A DNA stretch of 61,821 nucleotides, counting the filler, from Platydemus manokwari (taxonomy: Eukaryota): NCBI GenBank assembly GCA_037951405.1. It is 6 parts of 6 records of this genome, joined end to end, with 100 filler letters (N's around TTAATTAATTAA, not from the genome) between each part and the next. Parts side by side here need not be neighbours in the genome. Positions count along the whole stretch, not along the records: positions 38,700 to 51,354 come from JBBMOY010028902.1; 5 more parts are not named here. One strand, given 5' to 3'. A program made the translations under genes and the position numbers. This document shows, in pieces, positions 38,700 through 51,354 of this stretch; position 1 is the stretch's first letter; the number at the start of each line of letters is the position of its first letter. A model generated the notes under the pieces. That model did not search any database and had not been told where the DNA came from. It saw only the letters and a program-made list of their open reading frames with translations.

Positions 38700-38792
38700 T
38701 AGATCTTTTTAAAAAATCTGCTTTATTTCCGATTTTTACAACATATTCATCAACAAAATATAATTATTGATTGTAGGATTTCGGTAATTTAG

Positions 38793-38987
38793 ATATTTGT
38801 CTTCATTTTAATATTGCCTGATTTGCTGAATGGATCATTTACAACAAAAGTTGATTGTGTTCGAAAATGTCCCGGACATACAAAATATTGTCGATTTCAT
38901 AATAATGGACATTGGTTAATTAATTCTTTTAATTGTAAAAAAAATTCTGATCCATGCATTAAGAAATGCAAACTTGACCCAAAATGA
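38793..38987 (+). CDS. Small secreted six-cysteine peptide (copy A+); coding exon, start codon not in this exon
   Basis: Open frame IFVFILILPDLLNGSFTTKVDCVRKCPGHTKYCRFHNNGHWLINSFNCKKNSDPCIKKCKLDPK*. It has a hydrophobic N-terminus, the same Cys frame as 43467-43655, a preceding tttag (likely acceptor) and AATAAA at 39001. Confidence 0.7.
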   Translation: MFVFILILPDLLNGSFTTKVDCVRKCPGHTKYCRFHNNGHWLINSFNCKKNSDPCIKKCKLDPK

Positions 38988-40051
38988 TTTGATGAACATT
39001 AATAAATCGATGACTTATCATTCTGTTATTTGATTATTAATTAGTTTATCGTCAGTTTATTTCAAATAATACATAATTATACAATTTCATATAAAATACT
39101 TTTAAAGATTTTTATAATAATTATTCAAATGAATAAAACATATTTTTGTGTTAAACAATCACATTAACCAGCAAATTTAAAATCAATATTTGAAATGTGT
39201 TTTAATATTATTTGAGTCATTCTTTGCAATAGTTTATTGTAAATTTCAAGAATATTTCTGGCAAACTTAAACAACTCGAAATATTTTATTTTCATTTCCA
39301 TCACGCTATGTTCATCTGATATTAATTTAAAGACATGTCCGATTTTAAGAAAATAATATATCCAATAAGAAAATACTTGAAATATAATAAAACTTATAAT
39401 TAAACAATGAATTTTGATTGAATTTTGTGTATTTGATATTATGTCGTAATCAATATAATAAATTTAGATATTTAAGCTCTATTTTTTTTCACACTGAAAT
39501 AACACTATCAAAATTCCTTGTTCCATTATTGATTAATTATAGAAATATTTTAAATTTAGACTTTTTTATGGGAAACGTAGTCTCAATTGGTCGTAGTAGT
39601 CTCAAAGTCTCAATTTATAAAAATTTTGAATTTAAAAATTCATATTTCTTACATAAAAATATTCGACAATCTTGCTTAAAATGGGAAATGAGTTCCATAT
39701 TGATTTATGAAACGTCTAAATTTTAAAATAAAACATACTTTCATCGATTTATTGTTTTGTATTCCACTGCGTTGCAAAAAATAAAGAATACATATTGATC
39801 TCTGGATAAACTCTTATTAGTCGTTAACGGAAGTACGTATTGAATTTCACTCTATATTTTCGAAAGTCACACACCATATGTGGTCCCAAGTAATTTATTT
39901 TATTTCCATGCATTTGATTTCTTCTTCATAAAATATTTTACAAGGTATCGATACCATAAATAAAACCATTCTTTACGTGATATAAAATCTATTGTATAGT
40001 GTAAATTAAAAACTAAATTTTATAAATCAAGTGAAATCGATTCTAATTTAT

Positions 40052-40218
40052 TTAGTTATCATTATTAGGTTTGCATTCAAATGTAATTAAAATATAAGCA
40101 TTGAAGTATATGTGCAGTATTTTGAAGCATTGGGACAAAGACGTCTGCATTCTTTCCTGGTATTCAGAGAACCGAGATAAATAAACACCATTGTAAATAT
40201 TATTAATATTTTTGACAT
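40052..40218 (-). pseudogene. Six-cysteine peptide pseudogene (copy A-), paralog of 43467-43655
   Basis: MSKILIIFTMVFIYLGSLNTRKECRRLCPNASKYCTYTSMLIF* has a premature TAA at 40087-40089, then a 1-nt deletion and loss of the segment encoding the last two Cys. Confidence 0.85.
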
Positions 40219-41589
40219 ATTCTAAAATAAATTATAATTACAATAAATTTTAACCAATTAGATATCCTCACTATATCTTCTTTATATCTTCTTTATATCT
40301 AATCTACATCTTTTTATATTCTTTACATATTCTCTATATACTATCACATCTTTCTACTTCTTTTCCTAAATTTATAGTCATCAGTCTTCTCAGAATCGAA
40401 TCCAGATGCGTAGTCACCATGTAAGCTGCTATTATTTTATAAAACAATACGCATCGAAAACGAATTGAAAAAACAAGACATTCAATTCTATTCAAATACA
40501 ATTATTTAAACAAAATAAATAAAATTTAAAATAAAATAAAATTCAACATCAAATAAATTCAATACAAATTCAATTTGATATCCTTACACCAGGCAAGAGA
40601 AGTAACCAGAAAATTAATTTCCCAATTTTAAGCAGAATATCCAGTACTCCTAGATTTCCAGGGACGGCCAAAACTTTGATGAACTGAGTGGATATAAAAG
40701 ATCTCAGAAATTACTTACGAGCGAAATTATATATATTTTAGATTTACTTAAAAATTCTAGAAGTTGTGTCAATTTGAAACAATAAAAAATTTCTTTAGTA
40801 CAAACTTTCAATAATTTAATCCAAATCAATAATAATTTGCTGCAAGATTCATATTTATGTCGAAGTTCTGATAAAAATTATTTAATAAATGTTAGAAATC
40901 ATTTGTAGATCATGATGAGAAATGTAAAATTTTTAATTTTAATTTTTACGATAAATTCTGAATAAATATTTAGAATATAAATGAAAAATTATTTAAGTCA
41001 AAATGACTAATATACCTTTATTACAACCTTCATACAGCACAAGCAAAACATGTCCTCCATTTTCAATCATACATAATTTTACCTCAAGTAATTCAATAGA
41101 AAATAGTGTTTTATATTGATTTATAATATTATAAATCAGTGCAAAATCATGACAGGAAAAGTAAGCGTTTAGTTTTATTTTTTTTTTAATTTTGATTGAA
41201 TATTAAAAATCTAAACTGAATAAAATGTGTGCTTTAAAAACTGATTAAAATAGTGCTTCTAAGTGGCGATTTTATCGATTACAATCAATTTATGAAAATA
41301 AATATAAATAATAATATGATTGTATATATTTTAAAAATTATTAAAATTGCTTTAAAAATATTATAAACATCGCCTATCCTCTTCTAATAAAATTTTATTC
41401 AAAGCATTTAAAGATATTCGGGGATGTATTCATATTAATTGGCTGATATTCGAAATTGCATGTTTTATCATTTTATTGGTTATTCAGTTTATTATAAATT
41501 GTTTCTGTAATTCTTTGTGTACCAAACTTTAAAATCATAATTAATTCATTCGATTATTGCTTCAAAATTTAATTAAAATGAAATTGATT

Positions 41590-41890
41590 TATTATTGAAA
41601 TATTTAAAAAGTAGAGTTTTTGATTGAAAACGTCCCAATTTATAAAATTTTGTCATAAAAAATGCATAAATAATATTCTCAACAATCTCGCTTATAATTG
41701 GAAATGAATTCCAAATTGATTTATAAAATGCTTAAGTTTAAATATTAGAAAGAAGTTCAGACTACTATAAACCTTTCTTAAAGCGAAATGCCTCTCAATT
41801 TATTGTAATAGTTCAGATTATATTATCCATTGCAAAGAGTACACCTTGAAATCACATGAAATATACACTTGAGTGTGTTGATATTTCTAG
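41590..41890 (+). repeat. Local repeat; inverted copy at 46650-46950 and partial copies in both peptide cassettes
   Basis: acaatctcgcttataattggaaatgaattccaaa...gaaatatacacttgagtgtgttgatatt matches the reverse complement of 46651-46950; the core also occurs at ~39600-39730 and ~43030-43170. Confidence 0.85.
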
Positions 41891-42445
41891 GAAAGAAATG
41901 TATGATAAATTTTTAAGTAGATTAATAAAAATAAAACTGTTTTTAAAAATTATTTTTTTATTTTACACCTGATTCTGTATTTCTTTAACCACGAATGATT
42001 ATCATGAGCAAATTACAAGTAGTATGTTATTATATTTAATAAAATCAATAACATTGTTCGATTTTATTAAGAAATAACAAATAAAAACTTGTAAAATAAT
42101 TTAATTTCAGGATAATCGGTCGACTGCACATTGACAAATATATTTATGAAATTTGATTTTTCATTTGATTTTTATAATATTGATTTAAGACAAAATAGCT
42201 AGAACAATAAAATAATGATAACTGATTTCGAGCCACTGGTATGAATATTAAACGATTGAGATCAATATCAAAGAAATGTGGGATATAAAATACGACATTT
42301 GTAAAACAATTGTTTAAATCTATTTATGAAATATTCAAAACATGCTATTCATGTTGAATCTTAAATCATATTATCGTTATTGGAAAGGAAGCTTTATTTC
42401 CGATTTTTATAATATATTCATCAACAAAATATAATTATTTATTGA

Positions 42446-42583
42446 ATGATTTCGGTAATTTAAATATTTGGCTTCATTTTAATATTGCCTGATTTGCTGA
42501 ATGGATCACGTCCTAAAGATTTTGATTGTGTTACACAATGACCCGATTACGAAAATTATTGTGGAAAAAGGGAAAGAGTATAA
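42446..42583 (+). pseudogene. Six-cysteine peptide pseudogene (copy B+), paralog of 38793-38987
   Basis: MISVI*IFGFILILPDLLNGSRPKDFDCVTQ*PDYENYCGKRERV*. The second Cys codon is TGT>TGA, the putative acceptor AG is AA, and the C-terminal half is missing. Confidence 0.85.
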
Positions 42584-43466
42584 ATATGAAATTTTGTACT
42601 CTACGCATTAACAAATTCTACATAAATTTACTTAAACTTAAACAACTCGAAATTTTTTTATTTTTATTTCGATAACGCTATATTCATCTCATATTAATTA
42701 AAGGACATGTCCGATTTTCAGAATATAATGTATCCAATAAGAATTTATTTGAAATATAATTAAAAATTATAATTAAACAATGAATTTCTATTGAATTTTG
42801 TTTATTAAAATGACGATATATGTATTTAAAATTATTGATTAGTATGAAATTATTGATTGATGAATGAAATGATTAAAGTAATTAATATTATGTCATAATC
42901 AATATACTTAATTCAGATATTGAAGCCTTATTTATTTCACACTGAAATACCAATTTTAACAAAATTATGTGTTCAATTATTGATTATTGATTAAATTATT
43001 TTAAATTAAGAGTTTTTATGGGATACACAAAGTCTTAATATATAAAAATATTGAATTAAAAAATTCAAATTTCTGACATAAAAGTATTCGACAATCTCGC
43101 TTATAATGGTGGAATGAGGTCCATATTGATTTATAATAATGCCAAATTTCAAAATACGAAAGAAGTCAGATGAAACATATTTTCAACGAATTATTGTTTT
43201 GTATAAAACTTTGATCTCTAGATAAACTCTTATTAGTCGTTAACGAAAGTACGTATTGAATTTCACTCTATATTTTCGATAGTCACACGCCATATGTGGT
43301 TCCAAGTAATTTATTTTATTTTCATTTGATTTCTTAATAAAATATTTTTTAATTTCAGGGTATCGATACAATGAATAAAACTTTTTTTTACGTGATATAA
43401 AATCTATTGTATATTGTAAGTTAAAAAATAAATTTTATAAATCAAGTGAAATTGATTCTAATTTAT

Positions 43467-43655
43467 TTAGTCATTACATTTGTTAAGGCATGTATCATTA
43501 TTAGGATTGCATCCAAAATGTAATGCAAAATTACGCATTGGAGTATATCCGCAGTATTTTGAAGCATTGGGACAAAGAATTCTGCAATCATTCTTGGTAT
43601 CCTGAGAACAAGAAATAATACACATCATAGTAAAAATTATCAATATTTTTGACAT
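43467..43655 (-). CDS. Small secreted six-cysteine peptide (copy B-), 62 aa, intact
   Basis: MSKILIIFTMMCIISCS|QDTKNDCRILCPNASKYCGYTPMRNFALHFGCNPNNDTCLNKCND*: signal-peptide-like N-terminus, mature C-x3-C-x6-C-x13-C-x6-C-x3-C, AATAAA overlapping the stop, and three paralogs nearby. Confidence 0.82.
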   Translation of the reverse strand: MSKILIIFTMMCIISCSQDTKNDCRILCPNASKYCGYTPMRNFALHFGCNPNNDTCLNKCND

Positions 43656-44529
43656 ATTCTAAAATAAATTATAATTACAATAAATTATGACTAATAAGAT
43701 GAAATAAGTGTTTTATTTGATTAAAATTTAAACAAATACTTATAAGCTTAAATCATCTCCTTAAATAATACACAGATGATATGTATCAATATGATTTATC
43801 GACTACTTTGGGTACATCATTTATAAGTTCGAGCAATAGACATTGTGAAATATGAAAATTCATTGTACTTCTAAAATCATCTCTTATGTTACCTTTACCT
43901 TCATAATGCAGATAATATCAAAATATATTAAAGAACAAGAGCATTCAATTTCATTAAGCTCGAATAATGACTAAAAGTTAATAATAAAGATATTCAATAA
44001 TGATCTAAACATATTTACGCCTACAATCCCGTAATTTGATTTAAAAATTCTAATTTCCCAGAATGAAAGTAAATAAGGAAGGCCTTATAATAGGTTCTAT
44101 TGAAACAATTAAGAATTTTAAAAGTCTTTGTTTTATAAAATTTATTGTTTTATTGATATTATTTGTGTTTGGTATCACTATGGTCCATTAATCGAAATGT
44201 GTTTTTTAAAAACCACAGATGTAATGAACCTTATGAAAAGGAATACTAAATAAATCAGAGCCTATTTAAAAAATATGATTATCGAATCTGCATCTTCTTT
44301 CGTGATTTCATTTAGTTTGTCAACATTAATAAAATTATAGTAGGTTCATTTAGATAAGAGACGTGTATAATTTCATTAAATTAAGAAGCCATGAATATAG
44401 AAGTACCTTGTTTTAAAAAACATTCGTGTATAAAGTTCAAAAATAAAATCATTGTTGAGGCATTGTGAGTTCAACCAAAATGGTCATGTAAGAGTTTAAG
44501 AAAATTGAACAAGGTCAAGATAACGCTGA

Positions 44530-45115
44530 GTTTAGAAAATGCCAGGGTATGGCCTTTAAGAACAAGAACAAAGTTAGCCCGACGAATCCCTGAGTTTTGA
44601 GAAGAAAAAGTCTTATCTTTTCACAAATTTTTATATCAATACGGTGTTTTGACCTGTATGGCTGATGGCACCAAAATGCCTCCACTATTAATCTTCAAAC
44701 GTAAAACCCTGTCTAAAGACAAAATCCCTCCTGGAGTATTGATTTATGTTCATTCAAAAGGATAGATGGACTAGCAAGGCATAGAATTATGGTTTGTTAA
44801 AGTACGGTCTAGTCGTCTTGGAAGCCTGTTGAAGAAGAAATCTCTTTTGGTTTTTGATCAGTATAGAGAGCATTTGACTAAAAATGTAAATAAAAAGCTA
44901 AAGAACTCAGAACTATTTATTCCAAGTGGTCTCACAAACCATTCGCAACATCTTGATATTATTATCAAATGAATTAGTGAATCTGACTTAATCTCTTGAA
45001 GAAGACGAAAACCTCGCAATTCTGGTAATTGGTGAAAGCTTCATGGTATCATCAAATCATTTAAGAAAACCGATATTTGTAATGACTTTGATGGCTCTGA
45101 GTATGATGTTTTCTT
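44530..45115 (+). mobile_element. pogo-family (DDE_1) transposase remnant
   Basis: LRTRTKLARRIP..EEKVLSFHKF; LTCMADGTKMPPLLIFKRKT; KG*MD; SLLVFDQYREH; IPSGLT..QHLD; IKSFKK..I.NDFDGSE; contains stops and deletions. Confidence 0.88.
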
Positions 45116-46649
45116 TCAAAAAAGGATTCAAAAAAGTATTCAGATGATGAGAAAATTGAATACTTAGCTACAAAACTGGTTAATCAACTTGGTGAAAATT
45201 TAAAAAAATTATTTTTTTTCATTTAATAAAGAAACTTTAAATTATCTAACTTTAAATAAAAATGATTTTGATACATTTTCTTATTAGATCTAAAGATAAA
45301 GATATGAATAATTCATTAAATTCAATGAAACAGTTTGCTGATATTCTTTCTGTTTTCTTTGTGTAAGTCAAAAGATTAAAGAGATTTTGTGCTAAGAGAT
45401 ACCATAATACAAAATTAACTGAGATAGTAAATCAATACACTATTTTTAAACCCTGAAGTAATACTCATGACATTTAAAATTAAATACAATCGCAAAGCGG
45501 ATAAAATATTTATTTTATATTTTTAAAGATTCTATTTTGTCATAATTCTAGTTGTTTTTTTAGACTATTTATTTATTTGAGAAAAGCAGTGCAGAGTATA
45601 TTTTAACGCTTATATGTATTTTATATTGATTTGATTGAATCAGTTTAACAAAGCATGCCCTGCATTTGCTAATAAAAAATATATTACAGAAAAAAAGATG
45701 GAGGGTAAATCGATTGTTTTCCTCAGATTATTTAAAATACATGTATTATAAATAATTGAAATATCAACATAGATTTCATGGATATCATTTAAAAAGTATT
45801 TACTTGGTTCAATCAATCAGTTTTTTTAAAATGTGCTAATCATAATAATCATAAATATGATAAAAATATTATTACAATGACGTAAAACCATTACAACTTA
45901 AAAACTTTCAAAATTTAAATTCTCACCTTCCCAATCATAATTTTAGTCTTGATATTGATTGGAACAACTAAATGAACAAAATCAATTTATCAACATGGTA
46001 TTATGTTATAGTGATTTACATATGCAAATTATAACGCAACTTGCACCGAGGAGATTATCATAAAACTAGGAAATTGTTAACAATCTTAAATTCCTTTTTT
46101 TAATATTATAATACCAATGACATTAATCAGATCCAATGTAAATAATATTACAGATGCGATAATGAAATATTTTTATTTAATACAACGGAATGACATTGGA
46201 AAATGTTTTATGTAGATTTTAGCAACATAAACGACAACGTTCACAATTTTCTTAACGTTAATCTATTGCTTTAATGAATATAAATATGATTTAGATTTTA
46301 TAACTTTATTTAGGATTTTGAATTTTTTTTATTACATAATTTATAATCAACCTGAACCATTTTATAAATAATATTATTTTGAATTAATTTTTGCTAAAAG
46401 ATATTTACAACAATATGTCAAAAAAACCATTTCACCCTGTTTATTTTGTTTTATTATTTATTATATTATTAAAGCATCCAACTTGCTAAATTTACGCATT
46501 TCTTTGAACATATCTTATCATTCACCTAAATGTCTGCTTGCAGAAAATGGTTAACAAATTCAATAACAAATAATTTTATCCAATGAAATATTTAAATAAA
46601 TAAAGTATTTTTTAAATCAAAAATACATTTAATAAAATTAAAAAAAATT

Positions 46650-46950
46650 AAATATCAACACACTCAAGTGTATATTTCATTTGGTTTCAGGGTGTACTCT
46701 CTGCAATTAATAATATAATCTGAAAATTTACAACATGTTTAGACGCATTTCGCTTTTAGAAAGGTTTATATTAGTCTGGACTTCTTTCTAATATTTAAAC
46801 TTAGGCATTTCATAAATCATTTTGGAATTCATTTCCAATTATAAGCGAGATTGTTGAAAATATTATTTATGCATTGTTTATTTCAAAATTTTATAAATTG
46901 GGACTTAACGTTTTCAATCAAAAACTCTATTTTTAAAATATTCCAATAAT
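46650..46950 (-). repeat. Inverted copy of the 41590-41890 repeat
   Basis: Direct reverse-complement match over ~300 bp. Confidence 0.85.
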
Positions 46951-47049
46951 TTATCAATATTGAAAAACGGGATTTTTTAAAATGTTTTATTTTTAAAAAA
47001 TTAACAATAAAAAAATTTATTTTGATCACTGTAAGACTCGTGATTTTTA

Positions 47050-47530
47050 TTTTGAATTCAGGGGGACTGTATCGACTTACCCAAATTTTTTCGATTGTTG
47101 AGACCACTGATTCTGCTGTGATGTCGGTAGAGGGATTCCCTTGGGCCAGGAGGTGTGTGTATCAATTAAAGTGAGAATAAATCGTATATTGTTACTTGAC
47201 GGAAGCTGTCCAACAATATCCAAGTGCATTACTCGGAATCTACCTCTATCACGTAATTGACCAAATTTAGATTTTGTATGCCTGATAATTTTTTGAGACT
47301 GGCATAGGTGACATTGTCAGGTCTACTCTCGAATTTCATCTCTCTTTCCGGGCCAAACTTATCGTGATGTATGTAAATCAATGGTTTTATTTGCTCAAAG
47401 GTTGGCAATTCCGTGCAGTCTTTTAAATTCCATCATGCGATAAGGAGGTGGAAGAATAATGCGCTCTGTTCCATTGAGGATATCCACATTTATTCCATTC
47501 CTGATCACTTTGGAATTGACTTGTGGGAAG
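47050..47530 (-). pseudogene. Ty3/gypsy integrase remnant (HHCC zinc finger and start of the rve core)
   Basis: RIILPPPYRMMEFKRLHGIA; SR*VWPGKRDEIRE*T*QCHLCQSQKIIRH; RFRVMHLDIVGQLPSS..RFILTLIDTHTSWP; DITAESVVSTIEKIWVSRYSPP. Confidence 0.85.
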
Positions 47531-47591
47531 GTTTTCAGTTGATCGATGGCCACCATCCTGGTGGTGGGTAATTTTCAGTCTGTTGGATTGT

Positions 47592-48146
47592 TCAAGTTGG
47601 AGATATTTGTGCTAATCTGTCAGCTATTTGACTTAGCTCTGTGGTAGGTTTGTCATCGTGTGCCACGAGGTGTTTTTGGATGTGAAATGGCATGCTTCCT
47701 ATAAACGCCGTTCGAAGAATATTGGAATTCACATCGACACCGTTTGGATCGATGGCTTTGTGATGTCTGAGAAGAATTTTTAGATGGTCTGATGGGCGTC
47801 GATCTCCGATGTTTTCCTTGGAGAAGAGTCGTTCGATGTGAACCGATGTCGGGATGCTCCTGCTGTTGATAATGGCCGATCGAATATCAGAGTAAGGAGT
47901 GGGTGATCCAGATCCAAGAATTTCGCGAAATTCTGAGAGGGTCTCGGAGGGAAGATTGGCAACAATGTGCAAGTATTTCGTTTCTTTTTTTGTGATCCCT
48001 GATATCCGGAAGATGGTGTCTGCTTGCTGGAACCAGATGTCGGGACAGTCAAAATACCGTGGAAATTTGACGGCTACATGGTTGCATTCTAGCAAACCGC
48101 TTCTGACACCAATGTAAGACTCGACATTTTTATCTAAGTTGGGCAT
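47592..48146 (-). mobile_element. Ty3/gypsy Gag-like ORF, 184 aa
   Basis: VKFPRYF.CPDIWFQQAD..F...GI.....KY, YSDIRSAII, IGDRRPSDHL and LRTAFIGSMP...ELSQIADRL match the VKLPPFW/GDRKPS/LA..AD gag pattern; integrase lies directly downstream. Confidence 0.85.
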
Positions 48147-49619
48147 AAAGACAGAAGACGAGATTTACACTTTGAAAGTAATTTTAAATTTTATTAACAT
48201 TTGATTTAAACAAATGTGATTTTTAATTAAATATAATTATTATTATATTTTACTGTTACAATTATTATTATCATTATTATTATTATTATTATTATCATTA
48301 TTATTTTATTGTTATTATTTTTACTCTTATGTGAAAAATGTATGATTATAACTACTGATCGACACGATAAACAAACACAAAAACCTGAGTAATGAATGAG
48401 AATTTATAACACCAGAAATTGGACCAATTCTGGTATATGAGCAGTGACCAAAACTAATTAAATCACCACATAGAAACATATCGAAAAATAACTCAAGAAT
48501 TAATTTTAAGTATTATTATCAAAAGTCCAAAGAAAATAAAAAAAGGTAAAATATTTTGTTATGTTTCGGATGTTTTGTTTATATACTGATTACCGAGCCA
48601 AAGTAAAATAACAGGTGATTGTTAAAAATACGGGTTGCATTTCCTGTTTACTTGTTATAATTATCCTACAACCACGGGTTGAATAGAAATAATATTCTCG
48701 ACACATTGTTGCTATGAGGGTATTATTCTTTTTATTATTCTCGGGATTATGGGTTGAATTTAAGATTCATTATTAATATTTTCAGTAGGCTATTAAATGC
48801 AGTGTTAATTATCATTAAGCCTATTTATTGGTAAACTAAAAATTTCATTAAATTACCATTAATTTAAATGGTAATGAAACTTATTATTAAAATTATTATT
48901 ATTATAGCCAGAATTATTATTATTTTCCACTTGGGCCTTTGTTAATCCCGTTTAAGGATTACTATTATTTAAACTTCAAGTTCAGAATTTGTTGCACATA
49001 AAAAATAAAGAATTAAATACATATAAATTAATATTTACGATTCCCCACAATCATTCATTACTGATATATACCCAATTAGTACTGATATACATTAAATCGT
49101 TGAAAAATTCATACAACAATTCATGCAAGGCAAATTTCGAGCCAATCACATGATTAAATATTAATTATTATTAATATATTTTTTTAAAAAAGTAGGACAT
49201 AAATTATAAAAATAACAATAACCGAAAAAATTAATGTGTTTAAATATATCAAAAATTACATTTATTTAGGTGCTTTAAAATATAGTCAATCATGTTCAAT
49301 ATGAACACTAACGTTCCAATTTTTTCAAATGATCATATTAAAAAATAATATGAACAGTTATTAACATAGCAATATCAAAGATTTCTCTAAAAATTATTTA
49401 TTAAACCTTTTTATCACAATTTTTATTTCTTTGACACATAATAAAGTCTTTTAATTTCAATGGTCTTCGTGCTTTTTCTCCTTGAATTTCTTCAATCGAA
49501 TCCTATATTTTGTTCAACTTATTAGGAATATTAGTTTGGGAGTATTTTTCAAGATTTTTTGCATATTCAAAGTCTAATCCTGTTATTACTGTATCTTCTT
49601 CACCTCTTCAACAAAATTA

Positions 49620-49940
49620 TCATTTGTTTCTTTTATCAACGTCTTTTTGGTGAACAGGTGCGTTGTCTAACAATAATGCAATTTTCCGATCCTCTGCTTT
49701 CATTGTATTGTTTAAATCTTTTAATCAATCGTGAAAAATTACCAACCAATTGTCACTCAAGATTTTGTATTCCAACGATAATAGGTAGGCAATTTTCCCA
49801 TATCAAAATTTCTCAAACTTCGATCGGCCTATCACTAAAGGCTTTTTAATATTTCTCCTAATATGTTTGCATCCAAGATAATAGTAATTAGACCTTTAGA
49901 AAACTTACCATTTGCCTTATCCTCTTTAGAAATTGCAAAT
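49620..49940 (-). mobile_element. Tigger-like (DDE_1) transposase remnant
   Basis: GKFSKGLITIILDAN, PLVIGRS, KLPTYYRWNTKS and LKDLNNTMKAEDRKIALLLDNAPVH, with frameshifts. Confidence 0.75.
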
Positions 49941-50449
49941 GTTCTGTTTAAGAAGCATTTCCAGAACAGTCAGTTAAAAATTAAATATTTTAACCAAATT
50001 TGTATAATTTATTGATTTATTTTGCATTATTTTTTGTTCACTGTTCAAAATAAACAATGTTCGTTTTATAAAACATAATTTTCTATGAAAATCATATGAT
50101 TTCCAATAAGTTTTGACTTAAATTTTCACATTAAACTGGGTCCATATTAAACAGGGCTTATATTGAATAGGGTTGACTATAATCAAATAGCTTGTCTGAC
50201 CTCAAGGTCAAAAAATTTTATCAGAAAATATTTTTAGTAAAATTATCAAATAAAGTTATAGGTTTTTACTAAATTTAGTACTGACATGTAAACATTGCTA
50301 AGAATAATAACAAATGTAGGCAAGTTACCTAATCATACATGCAAAGGACTCTAAACAGTTTATTAACATGAAGCAATAATCATTTACCGCATAATTTCAA
50401 CGATACACAATTTTGTCACTTAAGTTTGAACGTCTAATTTTATTCTATT

Positions 50450-51105
50450 TGCGATATCCATAGAAGAAGTATTCCCAACATGTATGTACAAATAATTTGA
50501 TTGATCCAGCAGATCATCTAAAATTGAATTTTATTATTTTTGAAATCGTTCCAGCATATCAATGGTGTGCAAAAATTTTAAATTGCGCCGGCATTTTTTT
50601 ACATAAGCTTTTCATGTCTTTTAAAGAAATCAATTTTCTTATTGATATGTTCAGGACGTTTGATGTTTAGATGTCGCTTGGGCTTCGCTGGCTTTAAACT
50701 ATCATTTACCAAATTATCGAAAAGAATTGCACCAATCATCTGCTGTTCATTATTAACCATGGTAAATGAAAACCACAAATTAATAAATGTATTGTACAAT
50801 TACTTATTTTTGGATCTTCTTTTTTTTGTAAATTTTTCACAGAGCTGCTCGCATTCTCAACTTGTAATCGCAGATCTGAAGCTTAAGAATTTCTTGCATC
50901 ACTTTTTATTAACCACTTATCCATTTTCCTGGGTATGAAATTTTCATAAATCTGCCTTCTTTCAATATTATTAAAACAACAGCAATGAAATAAAGAGTTT
51001 AATTCATACAATAAATTACTTTCAACAAACCAGAAATTATAACAACCAAATTTTATTTTAAAATTACAAATTTTAGACCCCCCCTAGTTTGCTCACCCCT
51101 ACAGT
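50450..51105 (-). mobile_element. Tc1/mariner-like remnant
   Basis: SLKPAKPKRHLNIKRPEHINKKIDFFKRH resembles the Tc1 GL.ARRP.KKP.L...H...RL.FA..H motif. The minus strand at ~51105 begins TACTGTAGGGGTGAGCAAA, which is TIR-like after a TA. Confidence 0.5.
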
Positions 51106-51354
51106 ACATGACCATGAGTAAATTTTTATTTGTTTAATTTAAATTACGAAACACAGCTAGTTTTAGCCTTGTGGTCTTCTAAAATCATATAAGCACAACG
51201 ACTGATTCTCCACTGTATTTTTATTCTTATCACAATAGAATTTGTATTTACCTTGAGTATTTTAAATTATCTTATTATTAATTGATTATATTTTATTGTA
51301 TTGACTTATTTTGTTTCGATTATTTATATTTTAAATATTATTTATTATTATAAT

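Follow-up and report, generated by a model that had tools for sequence, protein, structure and literature searches.

Here we describe a cluster of small six-cysteine peptide loci in the genome of Platydemus manokwari (NCBI GenBank assembly GCA_037951405.1). The loci lie in a window of 61,821 nucleotides, in which six parts of the assembly are joined end to end with filler between them. The analysed piece is the part at positions 38700-51354 of the window (JBBMOY010028902.1, ~12.6 kb), and all figures given below per piece refer to it. Four related loci are found there, arranged as two copies of one 1.5-kb unit; two of the four are open and share a cysteine frame that has been conserved across two old paralogue types, and one of these two is a complete gene from start to stop codon. 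Taken together, the evidence makes it probable that we are dealing with a small, fast-evolving, lineage-restricted family of genes for secreted, disulfide-rich peptides, of which at least one is live.

The sole complete gene among the four loci, B-, is located on the minus strand at 43467-43655 and consists of an open reading frame (ORF) of 62 amino acids that runs from ATG to TAA. By simple rules, residues 1-17 resemble a signal peptide: the n-region contains a lysine, small residues occupy positions -3 and -1, and the hydrophobic core reaches a 9-residue Kyte-Doolittle hydropathy maximum of 2.9. A glutamine follows the predicted cleavage site, which would leave a presumed mature peptide of 45 amino acids (5.1 kDa, isoelectric point (pI) 7.8) carrying six cysteines with spacings of 3/6/13/6/3 and two N-x-S/T sequons. 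In the 5' flank of the gene (43656-43700, minus strand), the proximal ~40 nt next to the ATG are identical to the flank of the related locus A-. This common flank contains a TATAAT as well as a TTTTAG three bases before the ATG. At the other end of the gene, an AATAAA on the same strand (43462-43467) overlaps the stop codon.

The second open locus, A+, is located on the plus strand at 38793-38987 and comprises 64 codons ending in TGA, followed 14 nt past the stop codon by an AATAAA (39001-39006, plus strand). It encodes a hydrophobic N-terminal stretch like that of B-, and then a basic domain of 50 residues with six cysteines spaced 3/6/14/6/3. With a pI of 9.5 and a net charge of +7.7, the presumed mature part is strongly basic. 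No in-frame ATG for A+ is present in the 93 nt available upstream within the piece, and an in-frame stop stands directly 5' of the open stretch. Because the AG of this stop directly precedes the open stretch and could serve as a splice acceptor, A+ may form a downstream exon or may belong to a trans-spliced mRNA, as its body, and its start codon would then lie outside the piece. Spliced leaders that carry an AUG have been described in flatworms (PMC9851317). We also considered a non-standard genetic code that would read through the stop before A+. This was rejected, since the A+ and B- stops occupy corresponding positions under the standard code and B- would otherwise acquire a long low-complexity tail.

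Both open loci encode the frame C-x3-C-x6-C-x13/14-C-x6-C-x3-C behind a hydrophobic N-terminus. Aligned to each other, A+ and B- are 30% identical with one single-residue gap, and all six cysteines are in register. So are the aspartate before the first cysteine and the C-P and K-Y-C motifs in the first half, and an F-x-C, an N, a D, a C and the K-C in the second half. Simulations of the piece under a Markov model indicate which of these features exceed chance. ORF length is uninformative, given that 2.7 ATG-initiated ORFs of at least 62 amino acids are expected per piece and three are seen. An ATG-initiated ORF with at least six cysteines behind its N-terminus, on the other hand, is expected only 0.02 times per piece. 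Furthermore, when the mature part of A+ was shuffled, all five cysteine spacings of B- were matched within one residue in only 41 of 200,000 trials.

The relationship between A+ and B- is also an old one. At the DNA level the two are 51% identical with silent sites near saturation, and their flanks cannot be aligned (z scores of -0.3 and 0.8 for the 5' and 3' flank, respectively, against 4.3 for the coding parts). Moreover, in four of the six cysteine pairs the two genes use different, synonymous cysteine codons. Because the flanks are unalignable while the coding parts still align, and because most of the paired cysteines differ in codon, the cysteines were kept for a long time at the level of the protein. 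Judged by these comparisons, the plus-strand and minus-strand types represent two old paralogue types.

The first-pass annotation of this stretch had proposed a cluster of small secreted peptide genes with four related loci, the two open ones sharing a hydrophobic signal-like N-terminus and a six-cysteine mature frame, each with an AATAAA at or just after the stop. Checks of the sequence and its ORFs located all four loci at the positions given there. The mature frame holds as proposed, with the six cysteines, the aspartate, C-P and K-Y-C in register and spacings of 3/6/13-14/6/3, and the N-terminus of B- passes simple hydropathy and -3/-1 rules, with a similar stretch in A+. Likewise, the AATAAA hexamers are where they were said to be, although they are weak evidence because this motif is frequent in the piece, with 4.6 occurrences per kb on each strand. 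The proposal of a gene cluster needs qualification: the four loci are indeed related, but they are not four genes, since B- alone is complete, A+ has no visible start codon and the other two are decayed.

The relationship among the four loci becomes clear from an alignment of the units that contain them. Unit A (38720-40263) holds the convergent pair A+ and A-, and aligns with unit B (42391-43700), which holds the convergent pair B+ and B-. Inside each unit the plus-type gene points right and the minus-type gene points left, so that the two face each other with 3' ends ~1 kb apart. Between units, identity is 85% in non-coding and 82% in coding DNA. Homology stops within the 5' flank of B- (43656-43700). 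A simple head-to-tail tandem array is excluded because the DNA between the units (40264-42390) and the DNA past unit B (from 43701 on) are non-homologous. Locus A- (40052-40218, minus strand) is a decayed copy of the B- type, which retains the ATG and the first three cysteines and has lost the last two; further on, its frame is broken by an in-frame stop, a frameshift and a short deletion. Locus B+ (42446-42583, plus strand) is a decayed copy of the A+ type, in which a large deletion and two in-frame stops are seen and cysteines 4-6 are missing. In the mature part, A- and B- are separated by 12.5 residue-changing differences against 0.5 silent ones. This excess resembles what is typical of rapidly diversifying secreted peptides, with the reservation that the numbers are small and that A- is decayed.

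Two other features of the units were observed. A non-coding block between the convergent genes (39795-39909 in unit A, 43211-43325 in unit B) is 95% identical across units, and is thus more alike than either the peptide ORFs (82%) or the remainder of the unit (85%). This block has no match in Rfam, contains no tRNA and shows no excess of RNA folding on either strand. With all three tests blank, an RNA gene in this block was rejected. Immediately beyond unit A, on the upstream side of A-, imperfect direct repeats (TATATCTTCTT-like units) form a short run at 40260-40340 that has no counterpart at unit B.

To evaluate how many copies would stay intact by chance, we simulated neutral decay using rates taken from the non-coding alignment of the units (15% substitutions and 13 indel events in 915 aligned nt). 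Under a model in which both copies contribute equally to the divergence and the non-coding DNA is free of constraint, only ~3% of copies remain open with six cysteines, which puts the chance of two intact copies out of four at about 0.5%. In the actual locus two of the four copies are open with six cysteines, one of each type. The result of the simulation, together with the survival of one copy per type, is in keeping with selection that preserved a single working copy per paralogue while the redundant copies were lost.

The same simulation bears on a different reading, rather unlikely in our estimation, in which none of the four copies is alive, the family having functioned only in the past, and B- and A+ are open by chance. 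In favour of this reading, two copies are clearly decayed, A+ has no start codon and an in-frame stop just upstream, and transposon debris abounds in the region. The recent duplicates display no excess of coding conservation, with 82% identity in coding against 85% in non-coding DNA and with proportions of residue-changing and silent differences (pN and pS) that are about equal overall. An exact look-up of the B- product in gene collections returned no record. What argues against relics is the neutral expectation itself, ~3% for one surviving copy and ~0.5% for two of four, and the fact that each paralogue type is represented by one survivor.

Several observations weigh against the family of live peptide genes that we favour. 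In addition to the assumptions of the neutral model and the lack of excess coding conservation in the recent duplicates, only one of the four copies is a complete gene. The evidence for conservation is limited to four copies at one locus, with no homologue found outside the piece, and the remainder of the piece outside the peptide units contains only mobile-element debris, which makes for a transposon setting. Nor is the near-neutral charge of B- typical of membrane-active antimicrobial peptides. Structure prediction with AlphaFold2 gave low confidence, with a predicted local distance difference test (pLDDT) score of 50 for the precursor and 64 for the mature part, and a Foldseek search of the PDB with these low-confidence models found nothing at an E value below 4. 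For what they are worth at such scores, the models consist of three strands and one C-terminal helix.

Searches for relatives were carried out at several levels. In Pfam, neither peptide matched a family at E values up to 10. A word-index protein search of 5.8 billion clusters, queried with B- and then with the alignment, returned no candidates, and searches of PDB sequences with single-sequence and profile queries gave nothing significant (E values near 1). An exhaustive search of 1.84 billion representatives with a hidden Markov model (HMM) profile gave three matches, all of them translated tandem-repeat artefacts. This blank is not strong evidence, because at the cut-off of E 0.001 relatives of a 45-residue domain that score much below ~40 bits are missed. 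Finally, a metagenome scan with preset patterns found no match, while a scan with the degenerate pattern (D/E)-C-x3-C-P-x3-K-Y-C yielded at least 120 loci, none of which, among the matches listed, has the downstream cysteine frame. Overall, the six-cysteine family looks protein-coding and is without detectable relatives.

The precursors do carry the general features of secreted disulfide-rich peptides, being short, with a hydrophobic leader, an even number of cysteines, a conserved frame and hypervariable residues between the cysteines. As for particular families, the first-pass annotation had described the framework as unfamiliar and the peptides as a lineage-specific family. The second statement is supported, with no already described family in the Pfam test and no real relative in the PDB, word-index, 1.84-billion profile or metagenome searches. 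The first stands in so far as neither ShK, Kunitz, cysteine-stabilised (CS) alpha-beta, knottin and Kazal domains nor Ly6 match, but the outer spacings are not without precedent, as they equal those of the BCR3 peptides of aphids (PMC9604261).

Members of the BCR (Bacteriocyte-specific Cysteine-Rich) peptides are orphan proteins that carry a signal peptide ahead of a mature part 44-84 amino acids long; they are expressed in symbiont-housing cells, and BCR1, BCR4 and BCR5 are clustered by tandem duplication (PMC9604261; PMC3574423; PMC6594739). Synthetic BCR1, BCR3, BCR5 and BCR8 kill E. coli (PMC6594739). For at least one BCR the genomic position is given as one unbroken range of 204 nt, which hints at a single coding exon. 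The motif of the BCR3 subfamily is CX3CX6CX21-25CX6CX3C (PMC9604261, Table 3). In a full-text literature search for both half-motifs, BCR3 was the sole natural peptide family found, apart from an unrelated PLA2 sub-motif.

We therefore weighed a second alternative, namely that A+ and B- are divergent BCR3 members, which would be expressed in the bacteriocytes of an aphid or another insect that feeds on sap and would control its endosymbiont. The very low GC content of the piece would presumably fit an aphid genome as well. All four outer spacings, C-x3-C-x6-C ... C-x6-C-x3-C, are identical (PMC9604261, Table 3), and BCR3 is the only natural family in the literature searched to combine both half-motifs. 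The likeness would extend to a signal peptide, putative in B-, to a small six-cysteine mature peptide (45 amino acids in B-), and to an orphan, lineage-restricted distribution without wider homologues, and BCRs too are small, partly clustered in tandem and, in at least one case, apparently single-exon. The central loop, however, has 13-14 residues here as compared to 21-25 in BCR3, which makes it 7-12 residues shorter and places both peptides outside the BCR3 motif. BCR3 sequences are also Ala/Gly-rich and hydrophobic, whereas A+ and B- are polar and basic (PMC9604261 supplement). Beyond the cysteines no residue similarity is apparent when the peptides are judged by eye against the printed BCR3 sequences. 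Furthermore, no real protein appeared in the exhaustive profile search at E <=0.001, in a library that was not checked for the presence of BCR3 proteins. Membership of A+ and B- in BCR3 is thus not supported by the sequences, and we hold this alternative to be improbable. A likeness in working principle (secreted, with three disulfides, possibly antimicrobial) is nevertheless plausible by analogy. A more far-reaching version, which we would entertain only as a long shot, is that the 3-6-loop-6-3 frame represents a new disulfide-rich fold shared with aphid BCR3 in a wider, unrecognised superfamily of peptides that invertebrates secrete, and that A+ is a working gene whose start comes from an upstream exon or an AUG-bearing spliced leader joined in frame at the AG.

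Other known peptides are more distant. From what is described of MgCRP-I of Mytilus galloprovincialis (PMC4558851), these are likewise short secreted, lineage-specific peptides with six invariant cysteines and a highly variable mature region. They differ in having a conserved pre-pro region, no pro-region being evident in A+ or B-, and in that their cysteine pattern has been likened to that of other known cysteine-rich peptides; the comparison is one of descriptions (PMC4558851). The domains of CS-alpha-beta defensins, ShK, Kunitz, Kazal and knottin peptides are also small, secreted and held by three disulfides, but have other spacings, and none was matched in Pfam at E values up to 10, significantly in PDB sequences or, with the low-confidence model, in folds. 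Twin-CX3C helical-hairpin peptides (alpha-hairpinins and CS-alpha/alpha toxins) have four cysteines and two helices. Like these, A+ and B- carry two CX3C motifs placed mirror-symmetrically at the ends of the domain; unlike these, they have six cysteines, and the model, whose confidence is too low to settle the fold, predicts three strands and a C-terminal helix.

Lastly, it is very improbable that the loci are chance ORFs in AT-rich repetitive DNA or ORFs of mobile elements rather than a cellular peptide gene family: ORFs of this length are expected (2.7 per piece) and the unit is repeated and adjoins dispersed repeats, but the cysteine content and spacing are far from chance, the two old paralogue types resemble each other in their coding parts only, and no transposon domain was found inside the 1.5-kb peptide unit.

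For the favoured family of live, lineage-restricted peptide genes, we propose the following history. An old inverted duplication would have produced the two paralogue types that face each other. Much later, the 1.5-kb pair would have been copied once and the redundant copies would then have decayed, leaving unit B with B- and unit A with the A+ domain as the one usable copy of each type. B- would be translated from its own ATG, and its signal peptide of ~17 residues would send the product into the secretory pathway and then be removed. The 45-residue product would fold around three disulfides in the mirror-symmetric frame C-x3-C-x6-C ... C-x6-C-x3-C. For A+, the start codon would come from upstream of the piece, carried either by a preceding exon or by a spliced leader attached at the AG before the open stretch, and the predicted product would be strongly cationic (+7.7).

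As to what such peptides may do, secretion is in keeping with aphid BCRs of similar size and outer spacing, which are secreted and several of which are antimicrobial (PMC9604261, PMC6594739). We tentatively favour an extracellular role in host defence, directed at microbes or symbionts, which seems the most likely of the roles considered but in itself no more than possible. A toxin or signalling role is the alternative to host defence.

If expressed, the peptides would found a hitherto undescribed family of secreted peptides with three disulfides, tied to aphid BCR3 by spacing alone. Antimicrobial peptides, toxins and regulators of symbiosis come from such families, which also illustrate the birth, duplication and loss of orphan genes. 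The locus offers a compact case of this process, in which two old paralogue types were recently duplicated together and complementary losses then left one copy per type. Orphan genes for cysteine-rich peptides are, however, very common among invertebrates.

The piece is very AT-rich, with a GC content of 21-34% per kb. Its CpG observed/expected ratio of 0.95 (over 38700-51354) gives no sign of CpG depletion or methylation decay. Between the units, the transition/transversion ratio (Ts/Tv) is 0.65, and A-T transversions are the commonest class of substitution. We considered whether the region could be a fungal effector isochore mutated by repeat-induced point mutation (RIP). This was rejected on the basis of the Ts/Tv of 0.65, a TpA/ApT ratio of 0.78 and a CpA index of 1.4. 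No RNA gene was found anywhere in the piece.

Past the peptide units, debris of a pogo-like DDE_1 DNA transposon is found on the plus strand at 44505-45147, as several short ORF pieces with Pfam matches below the family cut-off. Retroelement debris follows on the minus strand at 47077-48146. It includes an open gag-like ORF of 184 amino acids that matches DUF7041 (E 3.5e-13); its product has neither an exact record in the gene collections nor relatives in the word-index protein search. The stretch after this ORF, which we take to be integrase-like, is broken into at least three frame pieces without a Pfam hit; neither a protease nor a reverse transcriptase was seen in the remnant. Elements of these types occur mainly in animals, and would thus be in keeping with an animal source.

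Finally, an unclassified dispersed repeat of 150-330 nt occurs in four copies, at 39540-39760, 41570-41900 and 42975-43190 on the plus strand and at 46640-46970 on the minus strand. The two long copies are inverted relative to each other and 91% alike, and the two short copies lie inside the peptide units. When prokaryote assemblies were probed with this repeat for contaminating host DNA, only six matches attributable to chance appeared. The repeat looks like a miniature inverted-repeat transposable element (MITE) or a short interspersed nuclear element (SINE).

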